IMG/VR virus record: IMGVR_UViG_3300048008_000449
Location: 1-64,000 of that record
Strand: one strand, 5' to 3'
DNA: 64,000 nt
The notes below the pieces were generated by a model. The model was not told the DNA's origin. It was given only the letters and a program-made list of their open reading frames with translations, and made no database searches. The stretch's first letter is position 1. The number at the start of each line of letters is the position of its first letter. This document shows positions 1,025-16,612 of this stretch, piece by piece. The translations under genes were made by a program, and so were the position numbers.

Positions 1025-1046
1025 ATGTACTCCATTATATATGTAG

Positions 1047-1739: not shown

Positions 1740-2079
1740 ATGCAAAGTAGTAGGACCAAACGCTAACTCAGAAGCAATGTCAATGAGATTTGACGGCTAT
1801 GTTGTTCCATGTTGTCATATGAATAGTCAACATGCAATGGATAAGTTATCATTGTTCTTGGGTAAAGATGTAAAAAATATACACATTACAAGTGGACATA
1901 GTATAGATGAAATAAATACTAGCAAAGAATATAAACGTATTGAAGATAGTTGGAACACACCTACACCTTTTTCAATTTGTAAAAGTGCATGTGGTAGACC
2001 AGGTGAAATAGGTCCAGACATACATCGCACAGGAACACAATTCGTTCAAAAGACTTTAAACAAGGATACACATGAATAA
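1726..2079 (+). CDS. Stand-alone SPASM/Twitch Fe-S domain protein
   Basis: PRC..MSMRFDGYVVPCCHM..ICKSACG matches the C-terminal SPASM region of 3469-4530 (CPW..QIDPWGTVWPCCHV..CQRTCG). Confidence 0.8.
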   Translation: MIYPRCKVVGPNANSEAMSMRFDGYVVPCCHMNSQHAMDKLSLFLGKDVKNIHITSGHSIDEINTSKEYKRIEDSWNTPTPFSICKSACGRPGEIGPDIHRTGTQFVQKTLNKDTHE

Positions 2080-3139
2080 ATCAGTAAATGCATGGAGCGA
2101 GTTTCAACCGCTAAAAAAAGTAGTGCTTGGCGCTCCGTTTCCACCTGAAACATTTGATTGGCATAAGGACAAAGAGACTCGTGATGTTATGCGTCAGATC
2201 TTTACAGAAACAGCAGAGGACTTACAAGTGCTGGAGGGGATATTAAAGGGCAAAGGTATTGAAGTAATACGTCCAAAGAATATATTTACAATCACAGGTG
2301 AAGAACAGATTCAATTACCATGGATGCATTGTGGTTTTCCAAACCACCCATTAATGCCACGTGATACATTAATGCCATATGGTAATAGTATTTTTGAACT
2401 GTTTACAGGTAGCGATAATCGCTACTTTGAAAATCTCGCATATTACGATCATTGTAGTAAATGGTTTCGTGAAGGTGCAGATTGGGTTAGTATGCCAGGA
2501 GTACTAGTAGAGAGTGGTAAAAAATACGACCACTTTGTAAAAAACGATCGACTGCTTTATCATGCGGCTAATATGATAAAGTGTGGACGCCACGTTTTGT
2601 TTAGCCAACCTTACGAGGGAGACAATAAACGAGGCAGAGGAACGGCACTGGGCCGCGAATGGATTCAACGTGAAATAAAGTTGCGATATCCAGACACCCA
2701 ATTTTTGGACATACCAGTAGGAGGACACATCGACGGAAAAATAGCTCTACTAAAACCTGGCGTACTGATGACCTGGAATAAAAACTGGGTACCAGAAGAA
2801 ATGAAAAACTGGACTATTATTGAAGTAGATGATGACTTTGATATGCCCGAAGACTTTCAACAAACTCGTAAGCGTAGATTTCATAAAGAATATGTAAGCA
2901 AGTGGTTAGAGCATTGGGTAGGTTGTCCAGATGAAAGTGTGTTTGATGTTAATGTATTATCATTAGATGAAAGCACAGTTATTTGTACAGGAAAAAACGA
3001 ACAAGCATTTGCTGAAATGGAAGCACACGGCATTGAACCAATTTACTGGAATTTTAGACATCAGTATTTTTGGGATGGTGGCATTCACTGTTTAACAAGT
3101 GATATAGTTAGAGAAGGAGATTGTGAGAGTTATGTATAA
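2072..3139 (+). CDS. Amidinotransferase (arginine:glycine / inosamine-phosphate amidinotransferase family, pentein fold)
   Basis: NAWSEFQPLKKVVLG, PRD, GHIDG, GGIHCLTSD with the catalytic Asp/His/Cys pattern. Confidence 0.88.
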   Translation: MNKSVNAWSEFQPLKKVVLGAPFPPETFDWHKDKETRDVMRQIFTETAEDLQVLEGILKGKGIEVIRPKNIFTITGEEQIQLPWMHCGFPNHPLMPRDTLMPYGNSIFELFTGSDNRYFENLAYYDHCSKWFREGADWVSMPGVLVESGKKYDHFVKNDRLLYHAANMIKCGRHVLFSQPYEGDNKRGRGTALGREWIQREIKLRYPDTQFLDIPVGGHIDGKIALLKPGVLMTWNKNWVPEEMKNWTIIEVDDDFDMPEDFQQTRKRRFHKEYVSKWLEHWVGCPDESVFDVNVLSLDESTVICTGKNEQAFAEMEAHGIEPIYWNFRHQYFWDGGIHCLTSDIVREGDCESYV

Positions 3140-3476
3140 TCATTTAAAAAATTACATTGGAATATATCTATTAGCAATGGTATGTTTTCTAATATATGCA
3201 TCTGAACCAACAGATGAAATACCAGTTTGGATATGGTATCTTTTCATTCCAGTAGTTTTATGGAAAACGCCACCGTTTAATATTGGTGATTGGTTTTGGG
3301 GTAAAGTAGCAAGTTTTTGGATGTGGATATTGAAACCATTTACAAGATGGCAAAACACTTGGCCTACATGGGTAAAGTATGTGTTTGGTATTGTACTTAT
3401 TATATTGTTTGAAGAATATATTTTAAAGCCAGCAGGCTACACAATGTATCCTTGGAGAATAGATTTTAATGGCTGA
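3132..3476 (+). CDS. Small Trp-rich integral membrane protein, unknown function
   Basis: Several hydrophobic aromatic-rich segments; ATG at 3132 overlaps the upstream stop like neighbouring genes. Confidence 0.65.
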   Translation: MYNHLKNYIGIYLLAMVCFLIYASEPTDEIPVWIWYLFIPVVLWKTPPFNIGDWFWGKVASFWMWILKPFTRWQNTWPTWVKYVFGIVLIILFEEYILKPAGYTMYPWRIDFNG

Positions 3477-4530
3477 TATAATGGAATGGCATAAAAATGT
3501 TACTTCATTGCAGTTTGACATTAGTAGTCATTGCAATGCACGTTGCGGTGCATGTGTAAGAAACAAAGATGGCGGGGAAACTGAATCAAATTTAGAACTA
3601 GCACATTTTGATTTTGACTTATGGAAACGTATAGCATATGAAGATACTAAACGTTGGTATATACATAGACTAAATCTAAATGGAAATTGGGGCGATCCAA
3701 TGATGCATCCAAAATTAGTAGAAATGATGGAAGTATGGTTAGATGCACACCCAAGAAGTACACCATCAATTGCAACAAATGGAAGTATGAGAGGACCAAA
3801 GTTTTGGCATGACTTAGCTAGTGTAATGCATCACTTTCCAAATCATAAAGTAGACTTCTCAATTGATGGAATGGGAGACACACATAGCATATATCGTAGA
3901 CGTACAGACTTTAATAAAATTTGTGAAAATGTAAAATCGTTTTCCGAAGCAGGCGGGCATGCTACAATACAATTTACAATGTTTGAACATAACGAACATC
4001 AGCATAAAGAAGTTGAAGATTTAGCAAGGTCGTTAGGAGCAATGCAACTTGTTAAACGTAGAAGTCATTCTTCAAATATGGTTATAAAAGATAAAGATGA
4101 AGAATATAAAATAACAGCAACTGAAGGTATTCCAGAAGAAAGAATAAAATTAAAAGATGATAGAATTGAAAGTACAAATCCACACAAAGTACATATATTA
4201 GAAGCAAGTGATATGTATGATACTTATTTGAACACTTCAGAAAAACAAAAAACAAAATGTCCTTGGTACAATGCACAAGAGATTCAAATTGATCCTTGGG
4301 GTACAGTTTGGCCATGTTGTCATGTTAGTCTATTTGGAGTTCATTTAGAAAAGCATAATATTGCTAATGAAGTAGATGAAACATTTGTACAGGCTAGAAA
4401 AGATAATAATTTAAAAGATAGTTCTTTGTATGATATATTAAAGTCTGATTGGTATAACGAACATGTTAAGTTAAGCGTCAAAGGCGCAAAATGGAAAACA
4501 TGTCAACGAACATGTGGAGTTGAAGCATAA
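3469..4530 (+). CDS. Radical SAM protein with C-terminal SPASM/Twitch domain
   Basis: CNARCGAC, NGNWGDPM in place of GGEP, ATNG, FSIDG; C-terminal C..PCC..C...C. Confidence 0.92.
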   Translation: MADIMEWHKNVTSLQFDISSHCNARCGACVRNKDGGETESNLELAHFDFDLWKRIAYEDTKRWYIHRLNLNGNWGDPMMHPKLVEMMEVWLDAHPRSTPSIATNGSMRGPKFWHDLASVMHHFPNHKVDFSIDGMGDTHSIYRRRTDFNKICENVKSFSEAGGHATIQFTMFEHNEHQHKEVEDLARSLGAMQLVKRRSHSSNMVIKDKDEEYKITATEGIPEERIKLKDDRIESTNPHKVHILEASDMYDTYLNTSEKQKTKCPWYNAQEIQIDPWGTVWPCCHVSLFGVHLEKHNIANEVDETFVQARKDNNLKDSSLYDILKSDWYNEHVKLSVKGAKWKTCQRTCGVEA

Positions 4531-5780
4531 TGTATAAAAATCCTATGTTAGATGATCATAGATTCCCTACATGTTTAGCACCATGGAACGCATTAACTAT
4601 TAAGTGGGGCGGTGCAGTATTGCCTGACATTATTTACAATGGCAAGTTTGGAAACATTACAAGACAAACATTACCAGAGATATTAAACAGTGAAGAAGCA
4701 GTAGCATTGCGTAAGTCGCATGCAAGTAGAATAGTTCCAGAAGCATGTTTAGCATGTACCAAAAAAGAACAAAGCGGTAAAAGTCGTAGAATGTATTTTT
4801 GGGATAAACTTGATGTCGATGTTAAAAAAGGAAGTATTAAGAACACAGCAAACAGTAAGCCTGACATACGTTATTTAGATTTTACAATCAGTAATAAATG
4901 TAATTTAGCATGCATACATTGTAATCCTTTTGTAAGTACAGGGTGGACCAAAGATGGAAAGAAACTAAACAAAGAAAAGCCAGACTATTGGAAACAAGCA
5001 CAAATAGGATATCACGGTGTAGAAGATATGACATTCCTTGATAACTTGTTTGCTGATCCAGACTATTTTCGTAACCTACAGTGGGTAGCATTAAGAGGCG
5101 GAGAGCCATTGTATGATGAGAGTTGTAAAGCAATATTACAGTGGTTTATTGATCAAGGACTAGCAAAGAATATTATGCTAGACATTAGTACAAATGCTAC
5201 AGTTTTCGATGATGACTTTCAGGAGATATTTAAACACTTTAAGCATATTGAATTGCTTATCAGTATTGAAGCAGTAGATGAATTATACAGTGTAGTACGA
5301 GGAGGATCGTATACATTTAAAGAATTAGAAGAAAACATAGAAAAGTTTTATACATATCCTAACATTGAAGTTGTGTTTGCAGTAACAGTTATGTTAACAA
5401 ACGTATTTGGGTTAGACAAAGTATGGGACTGGTTTAAAGAAAAACACATGCATAGAGCAAGTATAAGCATGAGTAATGTTGTAGTTAATCCTACATATTT
5501 AAATATTGCATACATGCCAGATGTGTTAAAATATATTATGTATGATAAGCTATTGTCTATTCCAGATCAAAGCATTTGGCCTAAAGGCAGTTATCATGTA
5601 GACGAAATACATTACCAAACTGGAATACATGCTATCAGAGATGGATTACAAGTTGAGGTAAACGAAAAAGAACAAGAAAAGCAATGGGATTGGTTTGTCA
5701 AGTATACAAAAGACTTAGACAGATTACGTGGAACAAACACGTTTGAATTAATAAAGGAGTTAAAATTATATGAACAGTAA
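4530..5780 (+). CDS. Radical SAM protein with N-terminal SPASM/Twitch-like domain
   Basis: N-terminal CLAPWNAL..CLAC; CNLACIHC; GGEP; STNA; SIEA..YSVVRG. Confidence 0.93.
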   Translation: MYKNPMLDDHRFPTCLAPWNALTIKWGGAVLPDIIYNGKFGNITRQTLPEILNSEEAVALRKSHASRIVPEACLACTKKEQSGKSRRMYFWDKLDVDVKKGSIKNTANSKPDIRYLDFTISNKCNLACIHCNPFVSTGWTKDGKKLNKEKPDYWKQAQIGYHGVEDMTFLDNLFADPDYFRNLQWVALRGGEPLYDESCKAILQWFIDQGLAKNIMLDISTNATVFDDDFQEIFKHFKHIELLISIEAVDELYSVVRGGSYTFKELEENIEKFYTYPNIEVVFAVTVMLTNVFGLDKVWDWFKEKHMHRASISMSNVVVNPTYLNIAYMPDVLKYIMYDKLLSIPDQSIWPKGSYHVDEIHYQTGIHAIRDGLQVEVNEKEQEKQWDWFVKYTKDLDRLRGTNTFELIKELKLYEQ

Positions 5781-6708
5781 CCCAGATTTTGGTACCAGTG
5801 GCAACAGCGTCTGGAATCAACAATATTTTGATTTTTTAAATGAAACATTCTTTCCTAAAATTGATATCACTACAATTGCTGATGAATCAAATATTATGCT
5901 TGATAGATATCAAGGATGGATAGAAAGTAGTACATTAAATAAATTTAAAGGACTAGACGCATTTCCAATGCGTTATGCAAGCGTTGGTACTACGCAAGCG
6001 TTAGATTGGTGGCATTATTATTGTGCAGTTAACAACATGGATCTAAAAATGTTTAGAGGAGAGTACCCATATCATAGAGATGCATACTTACAAACTCATT
6101 TGGGTTGGGATGATTGTATTGAAGATTGTGGATTAATTGCAGGTGATGCAGTTGTAGTAAGTGTTCCATTTAGTGCAACAGGCAGACTTCCAATACAATG
6201 GGAAGACTTAATGAAAACATGTAACAGACTAAAGATTCCAGTGTTTGTTGATTGTGCATGGTTTGGAACTTGCTTTGGTATTACTGTTAACTTAGATGAA
6301 CCATGTATTAAAATGGTTGCATTTAGTACAACAAAAGGACTTAGTTGTGGTAACTGGCGTGCAGGTATTGTGTTTAGTAAAGTAAACGAAAAAGACTTTA
6401 AACGTGCTACTGATGGTAGCTTAGAAACACAAACAGATTGGAATCATGGTAATCATCTTAATACTGCTATTGCTAACAGATTAATGGCAGAGTTTTCACC
6501 AGATACTATTCCTAAAAAATATATGGCATCGCACATGGCAGTATGTAAACATTATGGATTAATTCCTACACAAACTGTACATATTGCAGAAGGTGCTCGT
6601 GGAACTGAATGGGACGTATTTCATAGAGATGAAACATACAATAGAATTAATATTTCAAAAGCATTGAAGCGACACAAGAACAAGGGAAACTTTTATGACA
6701 ACATATGA
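5770..6708 (+). CDS. PLP-dependent transferase (fold-type I, aminotransferase-like)
   Basis: VFVDCAWFG (DxA aromatic) and FSTTKGLSCGNWRAG (S.SK..G.R.G PLP-lysine motif). Confidence 0.75.
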   Translation: MNSNPDFGTSGNSVWNQQYFDFLNETFFPKIDITTIADESNIMLDRYQGWIESSTLNKFKGLDAFPMRYASVGTTQALDWWHYYCAVNNMDLKMFRGEYPYHRDAYLQTHLGWDDCIEDCGLIAGDAVVVSVPFSATGRLPIQWEDLMKTCNRLKIPVFVDCAWFGTCFGITVNLDEPCIKMVAFSTTKGLSCGNWRAGIVFSKVNEKDFKRATDGSLETQTDWNHGNHLNTAIANRLMAEFSPDTIPKKYMASHMAVCKHYGLIPTQTVHIAEGARGTEWDVFHRDETYNRINISKALKRHKNKGNFYDNI

Positions 6709-7147
6709 TGATCCTATTAACATAACAACTAAAGGACAATATCCAATTAGAGCCCATATGGTATTTAATAACATGGGTCCAGAAAACTGTGAAGATATCC
6801 TTTGGCAGAATGTAATAGATTCAACAAGTAATCTTGAAGGAAACGAAATAGGTGTAAGTGTAACACAGAGTTATCAATATACAAAGTTAAATGACGATCC
6901 AACTATTATGGTTAGATGGCAAGGTATTAAGACTACAAATGGTAATGAATTTAGAATTGGTCTAGGAAAAGGAATACCAGCAGATAAAAGAACACCACCT
7001 ATAATGTCTGGCAATATGAAAACCGGAGTGCAAGTCAATAGTACACTATCTATACAATCAGTAAAACTAGGTTGTGTAAATGGAGAGTTTGCAATTGAAA
7101 AAGATGGCAAATGGTATGCTATTCAAATAGGAGAAGCTATTGAATAA
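6695..7147 (+). CDS. Hypothetical beta-rich protein with no enzyme motif recognised
   Basis: 150-aa ORF overlapping both neighbours; no motif recognised. Confidence 0.7.
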   Translation: MTTYDDPINITTKGQYPIRAHMVFNNMGPENCEDILWQNVIDSTSNLEGNEIGVSVTQSYQYTKLNDDPTIMVRWQGIKTTNGNEFRIGLGKGIPADKRTPPIMSGNMKTGVQVNSTLSIQSVKLGCVNGEFAIEKDGKWYAIQIGEAIE

Positions 7148-8276
7148 ACTTCCTAGTAATGCTTGTGTGTATCCATTCAAAGCTGAAATGCTTATGCATG
7201 GACAACCTGCGACTCCTTGTTGTAGGTTTCATACTAGATTTTTAAAAGGAAAAGGTTTTAACGAAATACGTGAAACTATGATGCGTAATGAATGGCACCC
7301 AGGTTGTTATAAATGTAAATCAGATGAAGAAGTTAAAGGTAGCAGTATGAGAACTGAGGCTGACGAATTCTTTGATGACTTTACAGACACTGTACGTTTA
7401 GAGTACTTAGAAATAACAGTGGGTAGACTTTGCAATTTAGCATGTTTAAGTTGTGGAAGTGAATTCAGTCATACATGGGACAAAGACGAAATAGCATTGG
7501 GAATAAGTAGCGAAGACAAAATTAAAAAATTAAAAGAAGTACAAGAATATGATTTAGATAATTTAGATTTAAATAATTTAAAGCATGTTAAATTTATTAA
7601 AGTAACAGGTGGTGAACCATTTTTACACAAACAGTTTTTAAATCTTATAGTTAGGTTAGCGGACAGTGAACTAGCAGGACAAATTAGCTTAGAGATATTT
7701 ACAAATTGTACATGGTATCCAGCCAAACTTGAACTAGATGCATTAATGAAATTTAAACATATACAACTAAGTCCTAGCATAGATGGTGTAGGTAGTACAA
7801 ATGACTTACTACGTTACCCATCTAAGTGGGAAAAAATAGAAGCTACACTTGACAAGTGGATTGAACTTAGAGACGCTACAGGACGCTTAAATATAGCTAC
7901 AGCCACCACTGTAAGCGTTATTAACGCTCCACAGCTACATGAGTTTATACATTGGGCAAGAGTGCATAAAGGAATAGGAGTTATACTACAGACGGTATAT
8001 GAGCCACACTATATGAGTGTAGAGCATTGGCCAGATTGGTATAAACAAACATTAGATATGATTGTTGAACAGCAATTTTCAGGGTTCAACAAAAATGCAG
8101 GTAAATTTAAGACTGCATATAAACTTTTAAAGAAGCTATGCAAATCGCATAGTAAAAAAGACAATAGTATTATGTATAAGACAGAACTAAAACATATACT
8201 GAAACACCGAGGCCAAGACATTAGTATGGCACCAAAATTTAAGAATATATTAGAGTATCATGATAAACAAGGATAA
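7140..8276 (+). CDS. Radical SAM protein with N-terminal SPASM/Twitch-like domain
   Basis: ACVYPF..PCCRF..CYKC; CNLACLSC; TGGEPF; FTN; SIDG. Confidence 0.93.
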   Translation: MNKLPSNACVYPFKAEMLMHGQPATPCCRFHTRFLKGKGFNEIRETMMRNEWHPGCYKCKSDEEVKGSSMRTEADEFFDDFTDTVRLEYLEITVGRLCNLACLSCGSEFSHTWDKDEIALGISSEDKIKKLKEVQEYDLDNLDLNNLKHVKFIKVTGGEPFLHKQFLNLIVRLADSELAGQISLEIFTNCTWYPAKLELDALMKFKHIQLSPSIDGVGSTNDLLRYPSKWEKIEATLDKWIELRDATGRLNIATATTVSVINAPQLHEFIHWARVHKGIGVILQTVYEPHYMSVEHWPDWYKQTLDMIVEQQFSGFNKNAGKFKTAYKLLKKLCKSHSKKDNSIMYKTELKHILKHRGQDISMAPKFKNILEYHDKQG

Positions 8277-9519
8277 ACTAAAGAAAAGCAAAACATTCTG
8301 CATGCTACCGTTTATGCATATTTACGGAACAGCAGGCGGAGACATTGTGCCGTGTTGTGAGGCACAAGAAATCCCATTGAATAAACCAGGGGAGACAGCT
8401 CTTGAAAGCTGGAATAACGAAAACTATAAAGAGCTAAGACGGGCTTTGGCAGAGGACGAAAGACCAGAACGTTGTAATGTGTGCTGGCACTTAGAGGATA
8501 GCGGCATTGTAAGCAACCGTCAACAATGGGAAAAAGACAACTGGAAAGACTTCAGTGACAAAGTTAAAGTCAATGATGATTTCAGTGTTGATAATAAACC
8601 TATGTGGGTAGAACTTAAAGTAAGTAACTTTTGCAATTTAAAATGTATTATGTGCAGTACACATAGTAGTTATAAACGTGTAAAAGACTTAGATATTATT
8701 AAGAAGTATACAAAAGATGGCTACGAAACTAGACTTTTACGACCTACGGATTTATTCGCAAGTTTAAATGAATGGCCTGATCTATGGGATAATGTTCACA
8801 CACTACAATTTACAGGGGGTGAACCAATCATTAATCAAGAGCATTATGACTTACTAGAAGGAATACCCACAGAAGTTAAATCAAAAATTAAATTACGTTA
8901 TGCAACAAATATAAGTCATATTAAATTTAAAAAATACGACTTAGTTGAAATGTGGAGACAATTTAAACATGTTAACATTAAAGTAAGCATGGATGGCGTT
9001 GAAGAAGTATACAATTATATTAGACAAGATGGTGATTGGGATACAGTATATAACAATATGCTTGTTCTTAATGCAGAACCAACAATAGATCTTGCTGTTG
9101 GTATAACAGTGCAATCTCATAACATTTATCATATGCCAGAGTTTTATCAATTTTGGAAAGAAAGTCCAATTGAATTAAAGTTTATTACAGCCAACGTATT
9201 ACAAACGCCAAAGTATCTAAGACCAAACTTATGGCCTCAACCATATAGAACTAAAATAATTGATAGACTAAGAGAAGCATATGAATGGTATCCAGAAATG
9301 GAAAGGTTTATAACGTACATGGAAAATAATCCACCAGATGAATTAAACTATACCAAGATGAGAAAATATACTAGAGATCTTGAAAACAGGTATCCCAAAG
9401 ATACTACACTAAAGTCAATGATAAAAGATCATTTAGGAATAAAACTGGAAGGAATGGACGAGGTCGATCAGCGAGTGAAAGATCAAGAAGCAGCATTTTT
9501 TAAAGGATTCAAACGATGA
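8260..9519 (+). CDS. Radical SAM protein with N-terminal SPASM/Twitch-like domain
   Basis: FCMLPFMH..PCC..CNVC; CNLKCIMC; TGGEP; YATN; SMDG..YIR. Confidence 0.94.
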   Translation: MINKDKLKKSKTFCMLPFMHIYGTAGGDIVPCCEAQEIPLNKPGETALESWNNENYKELRRALAEDERPERCNVCWHLEDSGIVSNRQQWEKDNWKDFSDKVKVNDDFSVDNKPMWVELKVSNFCNLKCIMCSTHSSYKRVKDLDIIKKYTKDGYETRLLRPTDLFASLNEWPDLWDNVHTLQFTGGEPIINQEHYDLLEGIPTEVKSKIKLRYATNISHIKFKKYDLVEMWRQFKHVNIKVSMDGVEEVYNYIRQDGDWDTVYNNMLVLNAEPTIDLAVGITVQSHNIYHMPEFYQFWKESPIELKFITANVLQTPKYLRPNLWPQPYRTKIIDRLREAYEWYPEMERFITYMENNPPDELNYTKMRKYTRDLENRYPKDTTLKSMIKDHLGIKLEGMDEVDQRVKDQEAAFFKGFKR

Positions 9520-9656
9520 AAAATAAATTGCTAACAGAAATTAAAAATTTGGAACAAGTAATATATATTTCAGAACTAGAAAAAGTTTCAGATAAAACTA
9601 TGACTAACCTTAGAAATAAATTAACAAAATTACAAAAACAGGCAGAGAATGATTAA
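9516..9656 (+). CDS. 46-aa basic, coiled-coil-like small protein (absent from ORF track)
   Basis: MKNKLLTEIKNLEQVIYISELEKVSDKTMTNLRNKLTKLQKQAEND; fills the gap exactly, with an ATGA overlap upstream and an 8-nt overlap downstream. Confidence 0.6.
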   Translation: MKNKLLTEIKNLEQVIYISELEKVSDKTMTNLRNKLTKLQKQAEND

Positions 9657-10926
9657 AGGCCAAAAAGATTGGGATTATCAATTTGTAAGTGACTGTGAAA
9701 TAGTAAATGTGTTTATACCAAAAAACACACATCTCAGCGAACACGAAGAATTGAAACAAAAGCTACTGTTATTGCAACAAGTAGAATGTGATAATCACTT
9801 GACATCAAGCATAGTTAACTTGTATAATACTAGTAGTATTGACTGGATTAACCATGTTAGAAAAATGGGACACAAATATGTTGCATTTTGGTTTGATGGC
9901 TGTTGGCCTAAAACAGAAGGTATTGAGAAAAAGATACTAACCTATATAACTAGATTAGAAAAGAAAGATTGGATAACCGCAGTACATCCAAAATACTTAG
10001 ATAGTTTAATGTTACTGAATATAGACGAATTTATTGCATGGCCTGCTAAAGCACCTAACTTTGGAAACTATAAGTTTTGGGCAGAGAATTGGATAAGTGA
10101 CTGTACAGTAGAATTAAGTAAAACCATAGAAAGAAACATAGTAGTGGGTGCACCACAAACAGATCCAGAGAACTTTTTAAATGGACTAATGAATGAGAAA
10201 TATACAGATCATACTATTTCAAGAGGTGCAAGAGTAATTATAAAACGTAAAAATATACCAAGTAGTCCTGTATATTTTGTTAATACAGAGCCACTAGATG
10301 TTGACATTATTGAGCAAAATAAGGGTAAAATATACCAACAATATGTGGGTACAACTGCAGGTTTTAAACTGCTATATAACGCATATAACTACGGTTTTGA
10401 TTTACACAGTACAAAGTTCGTCTGGTACGATTTCGACGCACACAGCCTCAAATTTAAGCGTCTAATGGTGGAAAATTGGGACGGAATTGACTATCCAGCG
10501 TTTGTTGAACAGTTTTGTAGCAAGTATCCAGAAGCAAACTCATTATTGCTAAAAGATGCTAAAAAGCAATGGGCAAGTATTCTTGAACACTTTGGCGGAG
10601 AAAACAATTGGCTAGATTTTTGGTGTCAAGTTGGATGTATGGAACACGAATTTATTGAAGTAGATTTAATCAGCGGACACAAGCAAATAACAGACAAATT
10701 AGATAACGTTAGTACATTCTTTTGGACAAGCAACATATACAGTTATGTATTGCTAAAAGTAATGAGCGAACCATTTAAGTTAGAACGTAGTTTTGCTGAC
10801 TTAGTAACAAGATTACAAGAGATTGATAACTGTTGGTTCTTTGGAACAGATCCAAATGATAATAACTTAAATTGCAATGTAAAATCTATATTAGGTTATA
10901 GTACAAACGAAAGTATAGGAACGTAA
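9649..10926 (+). CDS. Uncharacterised two-domain enzyme-like protein, paralog of 10926-12326
   Basis: Shared blocks with the next ORF: YFVNTE/YILNTE, VWYDFD..KF...ENWDG.DY / IWADYS..KW...NEWNG.DF, FWTSNIY/LQCSNIF. Confidence 0.7.
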   Translation: MIKGQKDWDYQFVSDCEIVNVFIPKNTHLSEHEELKQKLLLLQQVECDNHLTSSIVNLYNTSSIDWINHVRKMGHKYVAFWFDGCWPKTEGIEKKILTYITRLEKKDWITAVHPKYLDSLMLLNIDEFIAWPAKAPNFGNYKFWAENWISDCTVELSKTIERNIVVGAPQTDPENFLNGLMNEKYTDHTISRGARVIIKRKNIPSSPVYFVNTEPLDVDIIEQNKGKIYQQYVGTTAGFKLLYNAYNYGFDLHSTKFVWYDFDAHSLKFKRLMVENWDGIDYPAFVEQFCSKYPEANSLLLKDAKKQWASILEHFGGENNWLDFWCQVGCMEHEFIEVDLISGHKQITDKLDNVSTFFWTSNIYSYVLLKVMSEPFKLERSFADLVTRLQEIDNCWFFGTDPNDNNLNCNVKSILGYSTNESIGT

Positions 10927-12326
10927 TGAAAATATTTATAAGAAGAAAAGAAATATGTCATATATCAGTCAGTGGTGTATTATGTAAAGAGTTAGAAGAA
11001 AAAGCATCTGACGATTATATTTCTATCTTAAAAACAGCAACTAATATAAATCTAAACCTTAGTACTGAATCGTCTTATATACATGATATTGAAGTGGACG
11101 CAGTATGGGATGCGTTTGAAAATTTAAGAGATCTTGGATTTAAAGTAGCAGTGTTATGGGCTGAAGGTAGTTGGCCTTGTGATCCTGATATAGATGATCA
11201 AATATTAGAATCAGTTGAGGAATGGGACAAAGAAGAATGGGGTTGTGCAGGACATATTTTAGATAGACCTGGAAAACGCAAGCCTACATTCCATCATCAG
11301 TGTGTTATTGTTAATTTACAAAAACAAACAGAAAGTATTCAATGTAGGATTCGTGAGTATGAAGCAAGTACAGAACACTTTCACGATGACTACACACCTA
11401 AATGGATTAAACCAACAGGAGCTTCTAACTTATATGAATATGTTCCTTCTAGTAGTTGGAGTTACGAAGAAGCAAAGAAACCATATAACTTGTTTAATTG
11501 TATATTGAGAACATCTCTAAAAAAAGGTTTAAAAGTTTTTAATATAGGATATAATATACGTAATTGTAAAGTATGTACATACCCTGAAGATGATATTAAA
11601 TGGACAGAAGAACAATTATTTAAAGAATACAGTGATCCAAAGATTATATATGATATAAAAGAAAACTATCCAGACAAGTTTTGTTTACTTGAAGCTAAGG
11701 TAATGTCTGAAACTTCTTTATATATTCTCAACACAGAATCAGTACCACATGTAATACAAGATGATATACAAGTAATGGTATGTCCGTGTAGTGGGTTACA
11801 TCAATTTAAATTTATAGAAAATAGTTTAGAGGTAATGGAAAAAGTTATTTGGGCAGACTATAGTTCTTATGCAGTTAAGTGGATGGAAATACTAATCAAC
11901 GAATGGAATGGGAAAGACTTTCATGACTTCTTTGAAACTAACAAACATAGACTTGATTATGATGGAATGTATGTATATGGACATGGTACATGGGAAAAGT
12001 TTTTAGATAGTTTTGATAGCAAAGAACAGTGGTTAAGTGTGTGGAATAAGATAAGAAATTTAGAGCATGATTTTAATGTAATAAATATTGTTAATGAAAG
12101 TAATAAAATAATAGAACTAATCCCACATGATAAGAATGTGTTATTACAATGTAGTAATATCTTCATGTATGAATCAAATTATTTTAACAAAGGATTAGAT
12201 ACAACATTTAATTCTATATCATATGTAAGAAGTGTACAAAACATTTCAAACAAAGTTTACTTGAATGGTGATTTTAATGGAAATTTTTATGATATGGTAA
12301 ACATAGGTAGGAGAAAATTTATATGA
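10926..12326 (+). CDS. Uncharacterised two-domain enzyme-like protein, paralog of 9649-10926
   Basis: See shared motif blocks; N-terminal GHILDR..FHHQCVIVNL is glycosyltransferase-like by eye (weak). Confidence 0.7.
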   Translation: MKIFIRRKEICHISVSGVLCKELEEKASDDYISILKTATNINLNLSTESSYIHDIEVDAVWDAFENLRDLGFKVAVLWAEGSWPCDPDIDDQILESVEEWDKEEWGCAGHILDRPGKRKPTFHHQCVIVNLQKQTESIQCRIREYEASTEHFHDDYTPKWIKPTGASNLYEYVPSSSWSYEEAKKPYNLFNCILRTSLKKGLKVFNIGYNIRNCKVCTYPEDDIKWTEEQLFKEYSDPKIIYDIKENYPDKFCLLEAKVMSETSLYILNTESVPHVIQDDIQVMVCPCSGLHQFKFIENSLEVMEKVIWADYSSYAVKWMEILINEWNGKDFHDFFETNKHRLDYDGMYVYGHGTWEKFLDSFDSKEQWLSVWNKIRNLEHDFNVINIVNESNKIIELIPHDKNVLLQCSNIFMYESNYFNKGLDTTFNSISYVRSVQNISNKVYLNGDFNGNFYDMVNIGRRKFI

Positions 12327-13096
12327 CAATGGTAGATATACGAGAGTATAGAAAATTACATATGTTTAAGCCAGTTGATGAAAGAACACAAGAACATTTC
12401 TCAGCATGGGAAGATGTTAAAAAGAATCCAGCATTGGCTGACGAAATACAATTACAACCAAAAGAAGACGATGCAGATTTTATTAGAGATAATACTAAAG
12501 TGCCTTGGGTTGAAATTAAATCAAAAGTATTTTTTCCAGCACCTAGTATAAAAGCTGAAGCACAACAACTATTACGTACAGAATGTTTTACATCTCATAG
12601 AGCAGATAATTCAGGAGGCTGGATGAGCTTGTGTGTTTATGGAATGAGTAGTGTACATACAAATAGTACACACGATTATCAACTGCCAGAGTTTGCAGAA
12701 AGAGATCTAAGTGACTGGACAGACATTGCAAAGTTTTGCCCTATTACAAAAGACTGGCTAGAAAATAATGGACTGTATGATAGATATACACGTGTTCGTT
12801 TTGTAGTAGTATTGCCCGGCGGCTGGATAAGTCCACATGCAGATGTAGATAGTAAAGTAGGACTTGGTGCTACTAATGTATCATTAAACAATCCAGACGG
12901 ATGTGGATTAGTAATGGAAGAATACGGAAAAATGCCATTTGAAGATGGTAACATATTTAAGATTAATACTGGATACGAACATGCAGTATACAATAACTCA
13001 GGGATGCCTAGATTTCATATGATATTAGATGGCGATGTGAGTGATTATCAAAGAAATGAAATAGACAAGAATTATGCCAAAATGTTTGATGTTTAA
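12323..13096 (+). CDS. Aspartyl/asparaginyl beta-hydroxylase-like 2OG-Fe(II) oxygenase
   Basis: RVRFVVVLPGGWISPHAD (HxD) and INTGYEHAVYN..RFHMI. Confidence 0.85.
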   Translation: MTMVDIREYRKLHMFKPVDERTQEHFSAWEDVKKNPALADEIQLQPKEDDADFIRDNTKVPWVEIKSKVFFPAPSIKAEAQQLLRTECFTSHRADNSGGWMSLCVYGMSSVHTNSTHDYQLPEFAERDLSDWTDIAKFCPITKDWLENNGLYDRYTRVRFVVVLPGGWISPHADVDSKVGLGATNVSLNNPDGCGLVMEEYGKMPFEDGNIFKINTGYEHAVYNNSGMPRFHMILDGDVSDYQRNEIDKNYAKMFDV

Positions 13097-14126
13097 ACAC
13101 GGAGTAACAATAGGTCCTGTCGGAAACGTCAGACCTTGTTGTATGTACATGAATCAAGATTTAGACAAGCGTTATAATGACGAAGGCTGGCGAGAAGAGT
13201 TTGACCAACTATATGAAGAAAGTCTTACTAAATGGTTGCCCAATTGTTACGAGTGTAAAGCAGAAGAAGACAGAGGCGAAAATAGTTTACGTATGGATGC
13301 TAACAGATGGTTTGAAGGCACAGAAGGAATTCAGTATTGGGATTTAAAATTGCATAACACATGCAATTTAACTTGTGTTATGTGCAATCCTGTTAGCAGT
13401 AGTAAGTGGCAAACACTAGTAAACAATAACCCTGAAGAAGAATGGCTTGGTGTTGTTAAAAAAGAAGCACAAATGAAAACTGGTTGGCATAAAGATATAT
13501 TGCCACTAATGATGGAACAACTTTATGATACAAAATATTTAAAATTTACAGGTGGCGAACCATTAATGATTCCACATGTAAGAAAGATTATTAAAAAATT
13601 ATATGACGAGGAAGTATCACCAGCGGTGCGTCTAAGTATTATTACTAATGGAACAATTCCATTAGATGCTGAAATGCTTAAAATGCTATTAACATTTAAG
13701 CGTGTACTGTTTATTGTAAGTGTTGACGGACTAGGCGAGAGATTTGAATATATCAGACAAGGATCAAATTGGCAAGAAGTTGAAAAGAATCTTCAACAGT
13801 TTAAAAAAATTGAAACAATGCACAACAACTTTGGATTGAAAATTAACTTCCTTCCAATGGCAGTTAATGCTGCTCAGCATGATGAGGCAGAACAATGGGC
13901 TAAGAAGAATAAATATGAATTTAGTCATAGTGTTGAAATATATAGACCAAAGTATTTGACATATGCTAGTTTAAATGCTAAACTAAGAGATAGATATAAT
14001 ATAACTTCGCATTACGAATATGACGAAGAACAATACCAACAGCTATTAAAACATATGGCTATAAAAGATAAGTTATCAGGCACTAACTTTAAGAGTGCTT
14101 GTCCGGAGTTTTTTGAAGATGAGTAA
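13074..14126 (+). CDS. Radical SAM protein with N-terminal SPASM/Twitch-like domain
   Basis: PKC..GNVRPCC..CYEC; CNLTCVMC; TGGEP; ITNG; SVDG..YIR. Confidence 0.93.
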   Translation: MPKCLMFKHGVTIGPVGNVRPCCMYMNQDLDKRYNDEGWREEFDQLYEESLTKWLPNCYECKAEEDRGENSLRMDANRWFEGTEGIQYWDLKLHNTCNLTCVMCNPVSSSKWQTLVNNNPEEEWLGVVKKEAQMKTGWHKDILPLMMEQLYDTKYLKFTGGEPLMIPHVRKIIKKLYDEEVSPAVRLSIITNGTIPLDAEMLKMLLTFKRVLFIVSVDGLGERFEYIRQGSNWQEVEKNLQQFKKIETMHNNFGLKINFLPMAVNAAQHDEAEQWAKKNKYEFSHSVEIYRPKYLTYASLNAKLRDRYNITSHYEYDEEQYQQLLKHMAIKDKLSGTNFKSACPEFFEDE

Positions 14127-15336
14127 AAAATTACCAAGTGATACATTTTGTGTATTACCATTCATGCATGCCGCGGTTAATCCTGGCGGCGGGTTTCGTG
14201 TTTGTTGTAACAGTAATCCTGCTAACAATAAAGTACTAAAGGATGATGGAAGTGGCAAAGCGTATAGAATATTTAAAGATGATATCAACGATGCATGGAA
14301 TAGTAAATGGTATAAAAATATTCGTAAGCAGTTTATTAACGGAGAACGTCCTGAAACATGTCAAAGATGTTTCCGTGAAGAAGATGCAGGCATAAGAAGT
14401 CCACGTACAGGATATAATGAAAAATGGTATAAAGATGATGTTAATGTAGCTGAAGAAATACCATTGGATATACGTTATGTAGATTTGCGTTTAGGTAATT
14501 TATGTAATTTAAAATGTAGAATGTGTAATCCATGGAGTAGTAGTATGTGGGTTAAAGACTGGAACAAAGTAACAGGACTTGCAGAACTTACACCAAACGA
14601 TCCATTAAGTGATGAAGAACTAGATTATATGGAAGTTATGAAAGTATGGCCTGATCGTAAACAAACAGGATTAAACTTTGTAGAGATTGCAGGAACTATT
14701 GAAGAAATTTATTTAACAGGCGGTGAACCTACGTTAGCAACAAGTCAATATGCATTATTTGATTATTGTATTGAAAACGATTTAGCAAGTGGTATTAAAT
14801 TAAAGTATAACACAAACTTAACAAATATACCACAAAAGATGATTGACTATTGGAGTCACTTCAAAGGTGTACAACTTAATACAAGTATTGACGCAACAGG
14901 TGACAGAGATAGATATGTTAGATATCCAAGTAGTTGGCCAAAAATAGAACAAACATTTGACAAGCTGTTAGCATTACCAAATGTAGCAATTCAGGTACAT
15001 TGTACAGTACAAGTATTAAATATGTGTGCTATGAGTGAATTGTTTGATTGGACTAGAAGTAAAGGCATACCTGACAAAGACATATATTTAAATATTCTTA
15101 ATCATCCAGAAATGTACAACATTCGTACATTACCTAAAGAATTAAAACAACTAGCAGAACAGCGTTTACAACCATATTTAGACATACCAAAAGTAGCAGA
15201 TACAATTAAGTATATGTGGGCTGAGGATTGGCACGAAAAACGTTGGAAGGAATTTGTTGATTTTAATATGAAAACAGATGAATTACAAAAAGGTGACTTA
15301 CTAACAGTAGCCCCAGAATTTAAGAATTTTGTTTAG
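14119..15336 (+). CDS. Radical SAM protein with N-terminal SPASM/Twitch-like domain
   Basis: FCVLPFMH..RVCC..CQRC; CNLKCRMC; TGGEP; YNTN; SID..YVRYPS.W; start set at ATG 14119. Confidence 0.94.
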   Translation: MSKKLPSDTFCVLPFMHAAVNPGGGFRVCCNSNPANNKVLKDDGSGKAYRIFKDDINDAWNSKWYKNIRKQFINGERPETCQRCFREEDAGIRSPRTGYNEKWYKDDVNVAEEIPLDIRYVDLRLGNLCNLKCRMCNPWSSSMWVKDWNKVTGLAELTPNDPLSDEELDYMEVMKVWPDRKQTGLNFVEIAGTIEEIYLTGGEPTLATSQYALFDYCIENDLASGIKLKYNTNLTNIPQKMIDYWSHFKGVQLNTSIDATGDRDRYVRYPSSWPKIEQTFDKLLALPNVAIQVHCTVQVLNMCAMSELFDWTRSKGIPDKDIYLNILNHPEMYNIRTLPKELKQLAEQRLQPYLDIPKVADTIKYMWAEDWHEKRWKEFVDFNMKTDELQKGDLLTVAPEFKNFV

Positions 15337-15338
15337 CC

Positions 15339-15345: not shown

Positions 15346-15369
15346 GTGCTATAACAAGGAGACAATACA

Positions 15370-16035
15370 ATGGATAAATGGAGTGATATAATTTCTGCGA
15401 GAAGTACAACCTTTAGTTGGACTGATGAATTAATACCAAAAGAAGTAATACAAGAAGTATGTGAGGAAGTACATTTATTTTGCCCTAGTAAAAATAGAAA
15501 GATACCTTACATTGTAAACGTAATTAGAAATACAGATTACGATCAGCGTAAAGCCCTACACACAGGCTGTCATAGAAATACTGATCGTACTATAGAAGAA
15601 GACGGTGGTAACCCACAAGTGCTTGCTCCAACATTATTGGTGTTTAGTAAGCGTGACGTAACTGAAGCTGAAACAAAGTTTCAAACTATAGAAAAAAGAG
15701 TTGAAGATGGCATTGCTAATACAGATAACATTGAAATTGGTATGGCAGCATTATCATTCTTATACGGCTTAACATCAAGAGGATGGGATACAGGTTTGTG
15801 TCAGTGTGTTAGAAGTCGTAGTGGAACAGCAAGATTACTTGGAACCAACGGCTCTACTGATTTAATTATTGGTGTAGGTAAACGTAACACAGTAGATTCA
15901 GAAACAGGTGAAACAACAACTTGGCCTAAGTATATGGATCCACGTAACGATAAGCATCGTAAAATTCCATACCCATATGGAATTAGTCCTTATCCTAAAC
16001 CAAACTTTGACGATATATATAAAATAGAATTTTAA
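15370..16035 (+). CDS. Nitroreductase-family flavoprotein
   Basis: IISARSTTFSW, CPSKNRKIPY, DNIEIGMAA..LTSRGWDTGLCQC fit the nitroreductase R.S / PS..N.QP / D.GI..G..TC pattern. Confidence 0.75.
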   Translation: MDKWSDIISARSTTFSWTDELIPKEVIQEVCEEVHLFCPSKNRKIPYIVNVIRNTDYDQRKALHTGCHRNTDRTIEEDGGNPQVLAPTLLVFSKRDVTEAETKFQTIEKRVEDGIANTDNIEIGMAALSFLYGLTSRGWDTGLCQCVRSRSGTARLLGTNGSTDLIIGVGKRNTVDSETGETTTWPKYMDPRNDKHRKIPYPYGISPYPKPNFDDIYKIEF

Positions 16036-16048
16036 GTAAGTGAGATAA

Positions 16049-16612
16049 ATGAAAATAATCGCAACCGGTAATCCAGAATTTGGTGTTGCAAAAGCAATTG
16101 CTGAACGGTTTCCTGAAACAACCTTTGTCAATAGAACTGACTGGGGATATGATTTATGTCAAGATTCATATAAAAAGAAACTAGCAGAAAAGGCTCTTAA
16201 TTATGACGTCTTTATTAACTGTTCCGCACTATGGCAGTATCATCAAACTATGCTACTAGATGTAGTCTACAAAAATGCTTTAAAGAACCTTAAACGACTA
16301 CATATCGTGTCTTTGGGTAGTACAACTGACAGAGCCACCAAAGGTAGCGACTGGCATTATCAACAAGAAAAGAAGGCATTGCGTAGTACAAGCAATGCAT
16401 TGGGCTTAAAAAGCATATGGGCTGGTGGACCAAAAGTAAGTTATGTTACATTTGGAACACTGGAAAATAATGCACATAAGCATCCAGGAAGAACAGTAAT
16501 GAAACTAAACGAAGCCGTAGATATGATAGAATATGTAATTAATATGCCTTATCATTTAAACGTTAACGAACTAAGCATTGACCCAATGCAAACGGATTGG
16601 CCAAATGAATAA
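16049..16612 (+). CDS. Short-chain dehydrogenase/reductase (SDR)
   Basis: KIIATGNPEFGVAKAI Rossmann motif, INCS, SLGS, YQQEK (YxxxK). Confidence 0.8.
   Translation: MKIIATGNPEFGVAKAIAERFPETTFVNRTDWGYDLCQDSYKKKLAEKALNYDVFINCSALWQYHQTMLLDVVYKNALKNLKRLHIVSLGSTTDRATKGSDWHYQQEKKALRSTSNALGLKSIWAGGPKVSYVTFGTLENNAHKHPGRTVMKLNEAVDMIEYVINMPYHLNVNELSIDPMQTDWPNE

Follow-up and report, generated by a model that had tools for sequence, protein, structure and literature searches.

A large T4-like phage carries a long operon of about a dozen radical SAM (rSAM) enzymes built around an amidinotransferase and a PLP enzyme. The same gene set occurs in predatory Bdellovibrionia bacteria. Its product is unknown, and it does not look like a streptomycin-type aminocyclitol pathway. 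We analysed a window of 64,000 nucleotides (positions 1 to 64,000 of the 205-kb IMG/VR record IMGVR_UViG_3300048008_000449), in which a first-pass annotation had noted an amidinotransferase, a fold-I PLP enzyme and an SDR interspersed among rSAM genes, without an obvious leader-core precursor peptide. This observation was confirmed by our analyses. The accompanying interpretation, that the phage may make guanidinylated aminosugars or cyclitols by a streptidine-like logic, was only partly supported.

An amidinotransferase and a PLP enzyme are embedded in an rSAM operon

All three genes are intact open reading frames on the plus strand. For the amidinotransferase (2072-3139, 355 aa), phmmer searches against the PDB returned HsvA (4.9e-25), SxtG (7e-20), StrB1 (1.6e-16) and AGAT (3e-13) as the best solved relatives, whereas Pfam and NCBIfam gave no hit at E<=0.01. 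Cys340, the nucleophile of this pentein-fold enzyme, as well as His219, Asp98 and Asp221 are invariant in 15 relatives. The PLP enzyme (5770-6708, 312 aa) is a shortened class-I-aminotransferase-like protein that scores 25.1 bits for Pfam Aminotran_1_2 (cut-off 19.7), and its class-I aminotransferase motifs PFSGTG, D161-C-A-W and S-T-T-K189...G-x-R197-x-G are invariant in 10 homologs. The third protein (16049-16612, 187 aa) gave no Pfam, NCBIfam or PHROG hit, but has a TG-x4-G N-terminus and a Y-x3-K motif, and its language-model neighbours are short viral adh_short/Epimerase families, making its assignment as a mini-SDR plausible but not proven.

These genes lie among 12 rSAM open reading frames with a CX3CX2C motif in one plus-strand operon (1059-24629), which extends beyond the limits originally proposed (2072-16612). 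Eight of them score above the cut-off of NCBIfam NF033640 (N_Twi_rSAM), a family with an N-terminal Twitch domain. A 99.99% identical IMG/VR contig continues 7.9 kb upstream of window position 1, and this continuation contains a 5'-deoxyadenosine/MTA-nucleosidase-like gene, as would suit heavy rSAM turnover. A sigma-70-like promoter (975-1003, plus strand; TTGACA-17-TATAAT with TG, 12 of 12 consensus match) is a candidate start of the operon, although the total number of promoter-like sites in the region is not above that of shuffled controls. No leader/core-type peptide was found; the only unannotated open reading frame in a gap encodes a 46-aa Lys/Glu-rich helical product (9516-9656, plus strand), overlaps both neighbours with an ATGA start and shows weak conservation (38%) at the same place in the related locus L003.

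Gene content of the operon

Divergently from the operon, on the minus strand, a predicted KdoO-like Fe(II)/2OG dioxygenase is encoded at 194-1024 (276 aa from Met55 of the 330-aa open reading frame). Its AF2 model (pLDDT 85) matched KdoO, the Kdo 3-hydroxylase, best (Z 20.2, 240 residues aligned), while the next fold scored Z 10.8. The H141-x-D143...H242 triad is invariant, but the likeness is structural only, with 18% identity and no Pfam Kdo_hydroxy hit.

All following genes are on the plus strand. The operon begins with a split rSAM (1059-2079), comprising a core (1059-1739, 226 aa) and a SPASM piece (1726-2079, 117 aa) recognised by Pfam Radical_SAM and SPASM; this split is conserved in the related loci L011 and L021. 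The amidinotransferase gene is followed by a 117-aa hydrophobic (membrane) protein (3123-3476), found only in the close relatives L002, L009 and L015, and by an rSAM with a C-terminal SPASM domain (3469-4530; Pfam), for which NCBIfam hits remained below cut-off. The next gene (4530-5780) encodes the N-Twitch rSAM subfamily that travels with the amidinotransferase (NF033640, 254 bits). It lacks the second auxiliary-cluster Cys and forms an ortholog pair (SH-aLRT 95) with the Bdellovibrionia gene next to its amidinotransferase. Downstream of the PLP gene are a 150-aa protein of unknown function that is not conserved outside close relatives (6695-7147) and two N-Twitch rSAMs (7140-8276 and 8260-9519; NF033640, 219 and 319 bits), each with a Bdellovibrionia ortholog.

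Two paralogs (9649-12326; 425 and 466 aa) are predicted to combine a GT-A-like N-terminal domain with a class-I-methyltransferase-like C-terminal domain. In an AF2 model (pLDDT 90), GT-A matches reached Z 9-10, and the methyltransferase-like domain matched 6ulo at Z 13.2 and EgtD/NNMT at Z 9-10. However, no conserved DxD motif appears among the invariant or near-invariant columns of the GT-A-like domain, where only G84 is nearly invariant. The genome contains six paralogs, and in the related locus L035 the protein is fused to AspH. The neighbouring gene (12323-13096) encodes a 2OG dioxygenase of the Asp/Asn beta-hydroxylase (AspH/LpxO) family (Pfam PF05118, 1.6e-11), followed by two further N-Twitch rSAMs (13074-14126 and 14095-15336; NF033640, 200 and 381 bits).

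A nitroreductase-like protein (15370-16035) is only weakly supported (Pfam PF00881, 3.3e-4, below cut-off). Its homologs lie next to the amidinotransferase region in L009, L010 and L015, but none was found in the Bdellovibrionia loci, and the mini-SDR-like protein likewise has no counterpart in the Bdellovibrionia versions of the cluster, indicating that both are phage-specific accessories. The stretch at 16578-21457 encodes three N-Twitch rSAMs (16578-17780, 18492-19799 and 20150-21457) and a split rSAM with a core (17777-18499) and a Cys-rich C-terminal piece (19792-20157). Two paralogs (21348-23464; 382 and 323 aa; paralogy at 3.6e-24) share an N-terminal FG(D/N)SF motif and a later GH(L/I)S motif read from the sequence and are possibly SGNH-type hydrolases, without database support. 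The last gene of the operon (23454-24629, 391 aa) encodes an rSAM with 61-76% identical orthologs in distant phages and in Bdellovibrionota.

A conserved trio is shared between phages and Bdellovibrionota

To examine which genes form the core of the cluster, we compared related loci. The amidinotransferase, a Twitch-type rSAM and the PLP enzyme form a conserved adjacent trio in 18 of 18 viral loci with enough flank and in 7 of 8 Bdellovibrionota loci, and the PLP gene lies within about 4 kb downstream of the amidinotransferase in all 18 viral loci that reach that far and in 7 of 8 Bdellovibrionota loci. In the 346-kb jumbo-phage contig L024, the middle gene encodes a 2OG-Fe(II)-oxygenase-like protein instead of an rSAM, suggesting that the middle step is a C-H oxidation that either chemistry can do. 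Around the trio sit the KdoO-like dioxygenase, AspH/LpxO-family dioxygenases, the GT-A+methyltransferase-like proteins and at least nine distinct N-Twitch rSAM subfamilies, each with a one-to-one ortholog in a 30-kb chromosomal island of a Bdellovibrionia MAG. The nine phage-Bdellovibrionia ortholog pairs have SH-aLRT values of 95-100, while paralogs within the phage are only 21-31% identical. The paralogs are therefore old and each is kept, as expected for distinct steps of one pathway.

The streptidine analogy is not supported

A phylogeny of the amidinotransferase had been put forward in advance as a way to probe the aminocyclitol reading. In our tree, the enzyme falls into its own phage plus Bdellovibrionota clade, separate from the actinomycete and cyanobacterial sequences. 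Searches of the 205-kb record, which is only 56% complete, revealed no DHQ-synthase-like (2-DOI synthase) gene, no DegT/DnrJ/EryC1 (StsC-type) aminotransferase, no NTP_transferase, no GT2 and no cyclitol or NDP-sugar entry enzymes; inositol-phosphate synthase was not searched. Kdo and lipid A genes were likewise not found in the record. In addition, the PLP enzyme carries the motifs of class-I amino-acid aminotransferases and not those of the sugar-aminotransferase family, and the SDR is not part of the conserved core. The N-terminal domain of the rSAMs matches the BtrN Twitch domain (7.5e-6), but the rSAMs share only this domain with BtrN, and it sits at the opposite end of the protein. In contrast, the enzyme assignments, the absence of a detectable precursor peptide and the general chemical idea of oxidation, amination and then amidination hold, and several accessory proteins have carbohydrate-type folds.

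A possible pathway and its alternatives

We tentatively favour (confidence about 0.35) a many-step tailoring pathway, shared with predatory Bdellovibrionia and encoded by a phage operon of at least 32 kb, of which the region is the middle and which is cut by the start of the record; this pathway oxidises, aminates and guanidinylates a carboxylate-bearing, sugar-acid-like or amino-acid-like scaffold. In this view, the rSAM at 4530-5780, or the 2OG-Fe(II) oxygenase in the jumbo-phage version, would oxidise a C-H or C-OH position, the PLP enzyme would put in an amino group, and the amidinotransferase would convert an amine into a guanidine with L-arginine as donor. At least nine further, functionally distinct N-Twitch rSAMs, the KdoO-like and AspH/LpxO-family dioxygenases and the GT-A+methyltransferase-like proteins would tailor the same scaffold. 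We judge a sugar-acid-type unit of a glycoconjugate, such as an envelope glycolipid or glycan, to be the most likely scaffold, and a ribosomal peptide or a cyclitol to be less likely. While the enzyme families, catalytic residues, gene order, conservation and phage-bacterium orthology rest directly on our analyses, the order of steps, the substrate, the product and its role are inferred from them.

Besides the KdoO-like and GT-A-like folds, this reading is in line with the context in relatives, as the module of Campylobacter phage CP220 carries two nucleotide-diphospho-sugar-transferase-like genes and a PAP2 phosphatase, and phage S-SCSM2R has a DegT-family enzyme annotated as AHBA_syn near an amidinotransferase and an rSAM (PMC12801897). 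LpxO, the lipid A hydroxylase, is a homolog of Asp/Asn beta-hydroxylases. Several findings speak against it, including the lack of NDP-sugar, Kdo and cyclitol synthesis genes and of GT2 in the incomplete record, the structural-only KdoO likeness, the lack of a conserved DxD motif among the invariant or near-invariant columns of the GT-A-like domain and the absence of a recognised transporter or flippase. The PLP enzyme looks like an amino-acid aminotransferase, and its NRINI motif resembles the alpha-carboxylate-binding Arg of AspC, a resemblance that was not tested; this fits a free amino or keto acid as well as a sugar acid. Moreover, the closest solved rSAM cores include peptide maturases (SkfB, CteB) as well as MoaA and BlsE, and the closest solved amidinotransferase, HsvA, acts on spermidine (PMC6187163).

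Among the alternatives, a free amino-acid route appears possible but unlikely. Here, amidino transfer to a diamino acid, or use of Arg itself, would be followed by beta/gamma C-H oxidation by the rSAM or 2OG oxygenase and by replacement or cyclisation by the PLP enzyme, as in the VioC/VioD route to capreomycidine or the streptolidine and enduracididine routes, to give a soluble effector or building block. The full class-I motif set with the invariant C-terminal Arg R286, the exchange of rSAM for 2OG oxygenase in L024, the activity of amidinotransferase relatives on small amines and the lack of a precursor peptide and of sugar-activation genes agree with this route, although the VioC/VioD logic itself was not tested here. 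However, it does not explain the nine or more further conserved rSAM subfamilies, the GT-A-like proteins or the KdoO-like enzyme, and no NRPS, ATP-grasp or other ligase that would use such an amino acid was seen in the operon. Somewhat less likely is the modification of a ribosomal peptide or of a phage or cell protein, decorated by the rSAMs, AspH-type hydroxylases and GT-A/methyltransferase proteins, with the amidinotransferase converting Lys/Orn side chains to homoarginine/arginine. Most characterised SPASM/Twitch rSAMs that hit weakly are indeed peptide maturases (SkfB, 2.7e-12, with PapB, ScmE/F and CteB also hitting), and the archetype of the AspH family hydroxylates proteins. The fusion of dioxygenase and GT-A recalls the collagen lysyl hydroxylase/glycosyltransferase LH3, which appears among the fold matches, a second module of AspH and two GT-A/methyltransferase genes sits beside the tail sheath gene, and an amidinotransferase was detected in S-SCSM2R virion preparations (PMC12801897). 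In contrast, no leader/core peptide, RRE domain, leader peptidase or export gene was detected, a class-I aminotransferase-like PLP enzyme needs a free alpha-amine, and the same set sits in a bacterial chromosome with no phage structural proteins nearby.

Guanidinylated polyamines for packing or protecting phage DNA, or hypermodification of DNA bases, are improbable. HsvA as best solved relative and an Orn/Arg decarboxylase gene near the module in L024 would fit the former, and thymidine hypermodification pathways use rSAM and PLP enzymes (PMC5889632). However, no DNA-base transferase, kinase or glycosylase-type gene was seen in the operon, the cluster is also chromosomal in Bdellovibrionia, and nine or more conserved rSAM subfamilies are far more than any known DNA or polyamine pathway needs. 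We consider the originally proposed streptidine-like aminocyclitol, made by an SDR dehydrogenase, an aminotransferase and a StrB1-type amidinotransferase with BtrN/NeoN-like rSAMs, the least likely, in view of the lack of a DOI-synthase-like gene (inositol-phosphate synthase was not searched), of a DegT/StsC aminotransferase and of a sugar nucleotidyltransferase, the separate amidinotransferase clade and the non-conserved SDR. StrB1 is nevertheless a significant relative, the Twitch domain resembles that of BtrN, and the full cluster contains three amidinotransferase paralogs, which would suit multiple guanidinylations.

Comparison with known systems

Eight genes of the operon and 13 in the record score above the curated NF033640 cut-off over the full 398-position model. 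We found no characterised member of and no paper on this family, whose name does not denote a function. The amidinotransferase shares the fold and the conserved active-site Cys, His and two Asp residues with HsvA (phevamine A pathway), SxtG, StrB1 and AGAT, but identity is about 20-25%, its acceptor is unknown, and the residue aligned with StrB1 Asp179, the third member of the triad, is His164 here and varies within the phage family. As in streptidine and 2-deoxystreptamine aminoglycoside logic (BtrN, NeoN), an oxidising enzyme, a PLP enzyme and an amidinotransferase are encoded side by side, and the Twitch domain is homologous to that of BtrN, but it is N-terminal and the PLP enzyme is of another family. 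With regard to LPS remodelling, the protein at 194-1024 has the predicted KdoO fold over its whole length with the HxD...H iron site but no sequence-level membership in the KdoO family, and the protein at 12323-13096 belongs to the Pfam family PF05118 to which LpxO is related; their substrates were not tested.

The rSAM plus amidinotransferase module of Campylobacter phages CP220/CPt10 (Timms et al. 2010, PMC2853527) is also carried by T4-like phages, with five rSAM genes, a putative amidinotransferase and an unknown function, and was noted by its authors as an exchangeable block. The CP220 amidinotransferase is only about 25% identical and falls in another clade, with Halobacteriovorax. By BLAST, the CP220 rSAMs match only the other rSAM types of the window (those starting at 3469, 17777 and 1059) and not the N-Twitch genes, and no PLP-like or KdoO-like partner was detected. 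The cluster in the window is several times larger.

Setting of the radical SAM operon

The window covers the first 64 kb of a 204,772-bp IMG/VR virus record with a G+C content of 34%, which is classed as linear and estimated by CheckV to be 56% complete. The record is T4-like, with a family-B DNA polymerase (phrog_262, 2e-198) as well as tail sheath, tail tube and neck genes. While its polymerase is 44-48% identical to those of jumbo phages such as Atu_ph07 and GAP32, megablast of 40 kb of the window against GenBank phages returned no close relative. A tightly packed plus-strand operon runs from 1059 to 24629, its positive GC skew ends near 24 kb, and twelve of its ORFs carry a CX3CX2C motif. 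Two perfect (12/12) sigma-70 consensus promoters were found on the plus strand at 975-1003 and 9799-9828, the first of which lies just upstream of the first gene of the operon, inside the 5' end of the divergent KdoO-like gene. Elsewhere in the window, a ribose-phosphate pyrophosphokinase gene (30032-30979, minus strand; phrog_619, 8e-49) with a weaker nicotinamide phosphoribosyltransferase-family hit suggests phage nucleotide/NAD precursor supply. Scans with Pfam, NCBIfam and PHROG left the genes starting at 3123, 6695, 9649, 10926, 19792, 21348 and 22493 unnamed.

An amidinotransferase, a PLP enzyme and a possible mini-SDR

The first-pass annotation had named an amidinotransferase, a fold-type I PLP enzyme and an SDR among the radical SAM (rSAM) genes, and this observation held, although with less certainty for the SDR. 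The ORF at 2072-3139 is a genuine amidinotransferase of the pentein (guanidino-group-modifying) superfamily, with full-length phmmer matches in PDB to HsvA (4.9e-25), SxtG (7e-20), StrB1 (1.6e-16) and AGAT (3e-13). Mapping onto the StrB1 chain numbers placed Cys340 (nucleophile), His219 (catalytic) and Asp98 and Asp221 (guanidino-binding) at the positions of Cys332, His227, Asp108 and Asp229, and all four residues are invariant in 15 sequences. In contrast, the Asp of the Cys-His-Asp triad (StrB1 Asp179; AGAT Asp254) is replaced by His164, a position that is H, D or another residue in the relatives, with an unknown effect on catalysis.

The ORF at 5770-6708 scores above the Pfam Aminotran_1_2 (PF00155) cut-off and keeps the class-I aminotransferase signature, D161-C-A-W and S-T-T-K189...G-x-R197-x-G, in all ten homologs aligned, including the PLP lysine, the pyridine-N Asp and the phosphate Arg. 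However, at 312 aa (relatives, 257-318 aa) it falls short of the full-length two-domain architecture of about 360-400 aa. The sequence did not tell a transaminase from a lyase or decarboxylase, and a profile search of the PLP-like family against PDB sequences gave nothing useful.

For the 187-aa product of 16049-16612, the evidence points towards an SDR without settling the assignment: a TG-x4-G and a Y-x3-K motif are present and its language-model neighbours are viral mini-SDR (adh_short) families, whereas it has no database hit, with no match in Pfam and only weak PDB hits (0.12).

The N-terminal-Twitch radical SAM enzymes

Eight genes of the operon, and 13 in the record, score above the curated cut-off (170 bits) of NCBIfam NF033640 (N_Twi_rSAM) over the whole model, with scores from 196 to 381 bits for the 13 genes, whereas none of 14 control genomes does. 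Their auxiliary-cluster (Twitch) domain is N-terminal, with conserved C19, C37, C89 and C92, and is followed by CX3CX2C (C137, C141 and C144) and GGEP. The N-terminal part of a profile built from 20 members matched the C-terminal Twitch domain of BtrN (residues 183-257; 7.5e-6), while the core matched 8vpo, SkfB, ChlB, MoaA and BlsE best. The family shares a domain with BtrN but is not BtrN-like overall. No N-Twitch rSAM was folded, nor was the PLP enzyme. The subfamily encoded next to the amidinotransferase (4530-5780) and its bacterial ortholog (L023:11037-12284) have lost the second Cys of the auxiliary cluster, which could leave an open iron site, as in MoaA. Two rSAMs are split into two genes each (1059/1726 and 17777/19792). 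Outside the operon, at 54405-55709 and 55696-56808 (both minus strand), a further N-Twitch rSAM lies directly upstream of the DNA polymerase gene (51715-54408) and next to a protein with a weak DNA-methyltransferase PHROG hit, and four more N-Twitch rSAMs lie in two tandem pairs at 67-69.4 kb and 95.4-98 kb of the record.

Predicted folds of further operon proteins

We modelled two protein families. The divergently transcribed gene at 194-1024, folded with 11 homologs (pLDDT 85), matches the Kdo 3-hydroxylase KdoO at Z 20.2 with 240 of 276 residues aligned, compared to Z 10.8 for the next fold, and its HxD...H iron site (H141, D143 and H242) is invariant. The protein is not a sequence-level member of the KdoO family, as there was no match to PF11004 (Kdo_hydroxy) at E<=1 and no Pfam hit at 0.1, and a profile search of the KdoO-like family against PDB sequences gave nothing useful. 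The paralogs at 9649-10926 and 10926-12326, folded with 65 sequences (pLDDT 90), have a predicted GT-A-like N-terminal domain (Z 9-10 to several glycosyltransferases) and a class-I-methyltransferase-like C-terminal domain (Z 13.2 to 6ulo; 9-10 to EgtD and NNMT). The methyltransferase-like half is the conserved one, and no DxD motif shows among the conserved columns. No complex prediction was run, since no claim of binding is made.

The gene at 12323-13096 encodes an Asp/Asn beta-hydroxylase-family (AspH) dioxygenase. In a Bdellovibrionales MAG (L035:13256-15466), this domain is fused to the GT-A/methyltransferase-like protein in a 736-aa product that is followed by three membrane proteins (160, 332 and 175 aa). 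A second module of an AspH-like dioxygenase plus two GT-A/methyltransferase-like paralogs lies in the phage record at 171745-175413 (locus L062), between the tail sheath gene and a dNMP kinase and neck genes, and two further lone paralogs lie at 102094 and 122997. The genes at 21348-22496 and 22493-23464 are paralogs with SGNH-like motifs only; phmmer of the SGNH-like protein gave nothing, so the SGNH idea rests on motifs alone. The gene at 15370-16035 is weakly nitroreductase-like.

The operon showed no RiPP-type precursor peptide with leader and core, no RRE and no leader peptidase or exporter: it has no coding gaps apart from a 46-aa ORF at 9516-9656 (plus strand), and no peptidase, ABC or RRE Pfam hits were found. 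This ORF is translationally coupled to both neighbours (ATGA overlap with the stop of 8260-9519, and overlap with the start of 9649). We considered it as a precursor and rejected it because it is helical, Lys/Glu-rich, without Cys or a Gly- or Ser-rich core, and barely conserved (38% at the same place in locus L003), although weak or novel precursors are not excluded.

Conservation in phages and predatory bacteria

Twenty-one IMG/VR loci encode relatives of the amidinotransferase. One of them (L002) is 99.99% identical to window positions 1-13136 and continues 7.9 kb upstream (L002:1-7929), where it carries two more rSAMs, a PNP_UDP_1 (MTA/5'-deoxyadenosine nucleosidase-like) gene, two more amidinotransferase paralogs (381 and 429 aa, both ending in ...FGK.WGNNE.RR) and a 470-aa unknown, showing that the start of the record cuts the cluster. 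In all 18 loci with enough downstream sequence, the PLP-like gene follows the amidinotransferase and an N-Twitch rSAM, including a distant group at 47% identity in which the three genes are directly adjacent. In a 346-kb jumbo-phage contig, the middle gene is instead a 2OG-Fe(II)-oxygenase-like protein. A 27-kb contig from a 'Legionellales' MAG (PBLX01000063.1; L046) carries many genes 45-73% identical to genes around 134-140 kb of the phage record, and is probably a phage contig binned into a bacterial MAG.

A scan of species genomes revealed orthologs at 36-50% identity in nine Bdellovibrionales, Bdellovibrionia or Pseudobdellovibrionaceae MAGs. In one of them, a Bdellovibrionia MAG, a 30-kb island on a 917-kb contig holds homologs of nearly every core gene of the operon, including 13 N-Twitch rSAMs. 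The SDR, nitroreductase-like and SGNH-like proteins and those encoded at 3123 and 6695 have no counterpart there. We considered whether this island is a prophage and rejected this, as it is flanked by rpoD, dnaG and acyl-CoA carboxylase genes, which show it to be chromosomal, and further copies are scattered on other contigs and in relatives: of this MAG and 30 of its relatives (31 genomes searched), 19 carry the family above cut-off, with up to 39 matches per genome. A search for an NCLDV capsid gene in the 4.5-Mb genome that holds the island was negative but uninformative, because its controls were not detected either. A eukaryote-type UDP-sugar pyrophosphorylase (UDPGP) gene (741896-743551 of the island's contig; L026:16896-18551) lies two genes from the left edge of the island, with no evidence as to whether it belongs to it. 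A tree of the phage and island rSAMs showed nine one-to-one phage-bacterium pairs with SH-aLRT 95-100, with the two labels fully interleaved.

The aminocyclitol reading is only partly supported

To investigate whether the cluster follows the aminocyclitol/aminosugar logic proposed in the first-pass annotation, we searched the 205-kb record for the enzymes that such a pathway would need. No DegT/DnrJ/EryC1/StsC-family aminotransferase (PF01041), NTP_transferase (PF00483), DHQ-synthase-like enzyme of the 2-DOI synthase type (PF01761), GT2 (PF00535), KdsA or KdsB was found in the record, of which 44% of the genome is missing; inositol-phosphate synthase was not searched. The only PLP enzyme belongs to the amino-acid aminotransferase lineage, and only GT-A-like folds without a conserved DxD were present. 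Phylogeny of the amidinotransferase had been put forward in advance as a check on this reading, and in the resulting tree the window sequence sits in a phage and Bdellovibrionota clade (SH-aLRT 99), separate from the sister clade with the Streptomyces, Micromonosporaceae, cyanobacterial and CP220 sequences. The functions of the actinomycete sequences are not known to us, and a full tree with labelled AGAT, CyrA, SxtG, StrB1, HsvA and AmtA sequences was not built. The proposed interpretation is thus partly supported: the streptidine analogy fails on membership, while the logic of oxidise, aminate, amidinate is compatible with the conserved trio.

A tentative model and its rivals

Our preferred reading, to which we give a probability of only about 0.35, is a many-step tailoring pathway with the trio as its heart, in which the N-Twitch rSAM, replaceable by a 2OG oxygenase, would oxidise a C-H or C-OH, the PLP enzyme would aminate the oxidised position, and the amidinotransferase would make a guanidine from an amine and arginine. 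The interleaved orthology argues that the other rSAMs are distinct steps on the same scaffold. The KdoO-like, AspH/LpxO-family and GT-A-like proteins, together with the glycosyltransferase and PAP2 neighbours in the Campylobacter phage CP220, tilt us towards a carboxylate-bearing sugar-acid unit of a glycoconjugate. Our data demonstrate only the enzyme families, residues, synteny and orthology, whereas the substrate, the order of steps and the product are inferences. Among the alternatives, a free guanidino amino acid made by VioC/VioD-type logic is possible but unlikely, and peptide or protein modification somewhat less likely still, whereas amidino-polyamines or DNA modification appear improbable and the strict aminocyclitol model is the least probable.

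A more far-reaching possibility, unlikely but not excluded, is that the operon is part of the largest conserved rSAM pathway yet described, in which at least nine functionally distinct N-Twitch rSAM enzymes work with up to three amidinotransferases, a PLP enzyme and KdoO/LpxO-like dioxygenases to build a heavily radical-tailored, guanidinium-bearing glycoconjugate or metabolite of a new chemical class, and that the whole pathway has moved en bloc between T4-like phages and predatory Bdellovibrionia. If the product is a guanidinylated envelope glycan or a new metabolite, it would represent new enzyme chemistry and a new way for phages and predatory bacteria to remodel cells.

Comparison with known phage modules

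Phage rSAM arrays with an amidinotransferase were described in 2010 and 2017 without a function being assigned (PMC2853527, PMC5332604), and our literature searches on the N-Twitch family, on Bdellovibrio rSAM expansions and on phage amidinotransferase function found no functional study, nor any paper on the N-Twitch family itself. As far as these searches reach, the conserved trio, the exchange of the rSAM for a 2OG oxygenase, the N-Twitch family assignment, the predicted KdoO-like and GT-A/methyltransferase folds, and the one-to-one orthology with large expansions in Bdellovibrionia are new. These findings offer three handles on the problem: a minimal trio (amidinotransferase, C-H oxidiser and PLP enzyme) that can be reconstituted in vitro; the finding that the rSAM paralogs are old, distinct and individually conserved, which points to one long pathway rather than a diversifying family; and bacterial counterparts that provide a possible genetic system, as Bdellovibrionia MAGs carry the full cassette and isolate-named Halobacteriovorax genome records carry a CP220-like module. 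The CP220 module itself comprises five rSAMs, an amidinotransferase, two GT-A-like genes and a PAP2 phosphatase, and has its nearest amidinotransferase relatives in Halobacteriovorax, which also carries five rSAM genes beside it.
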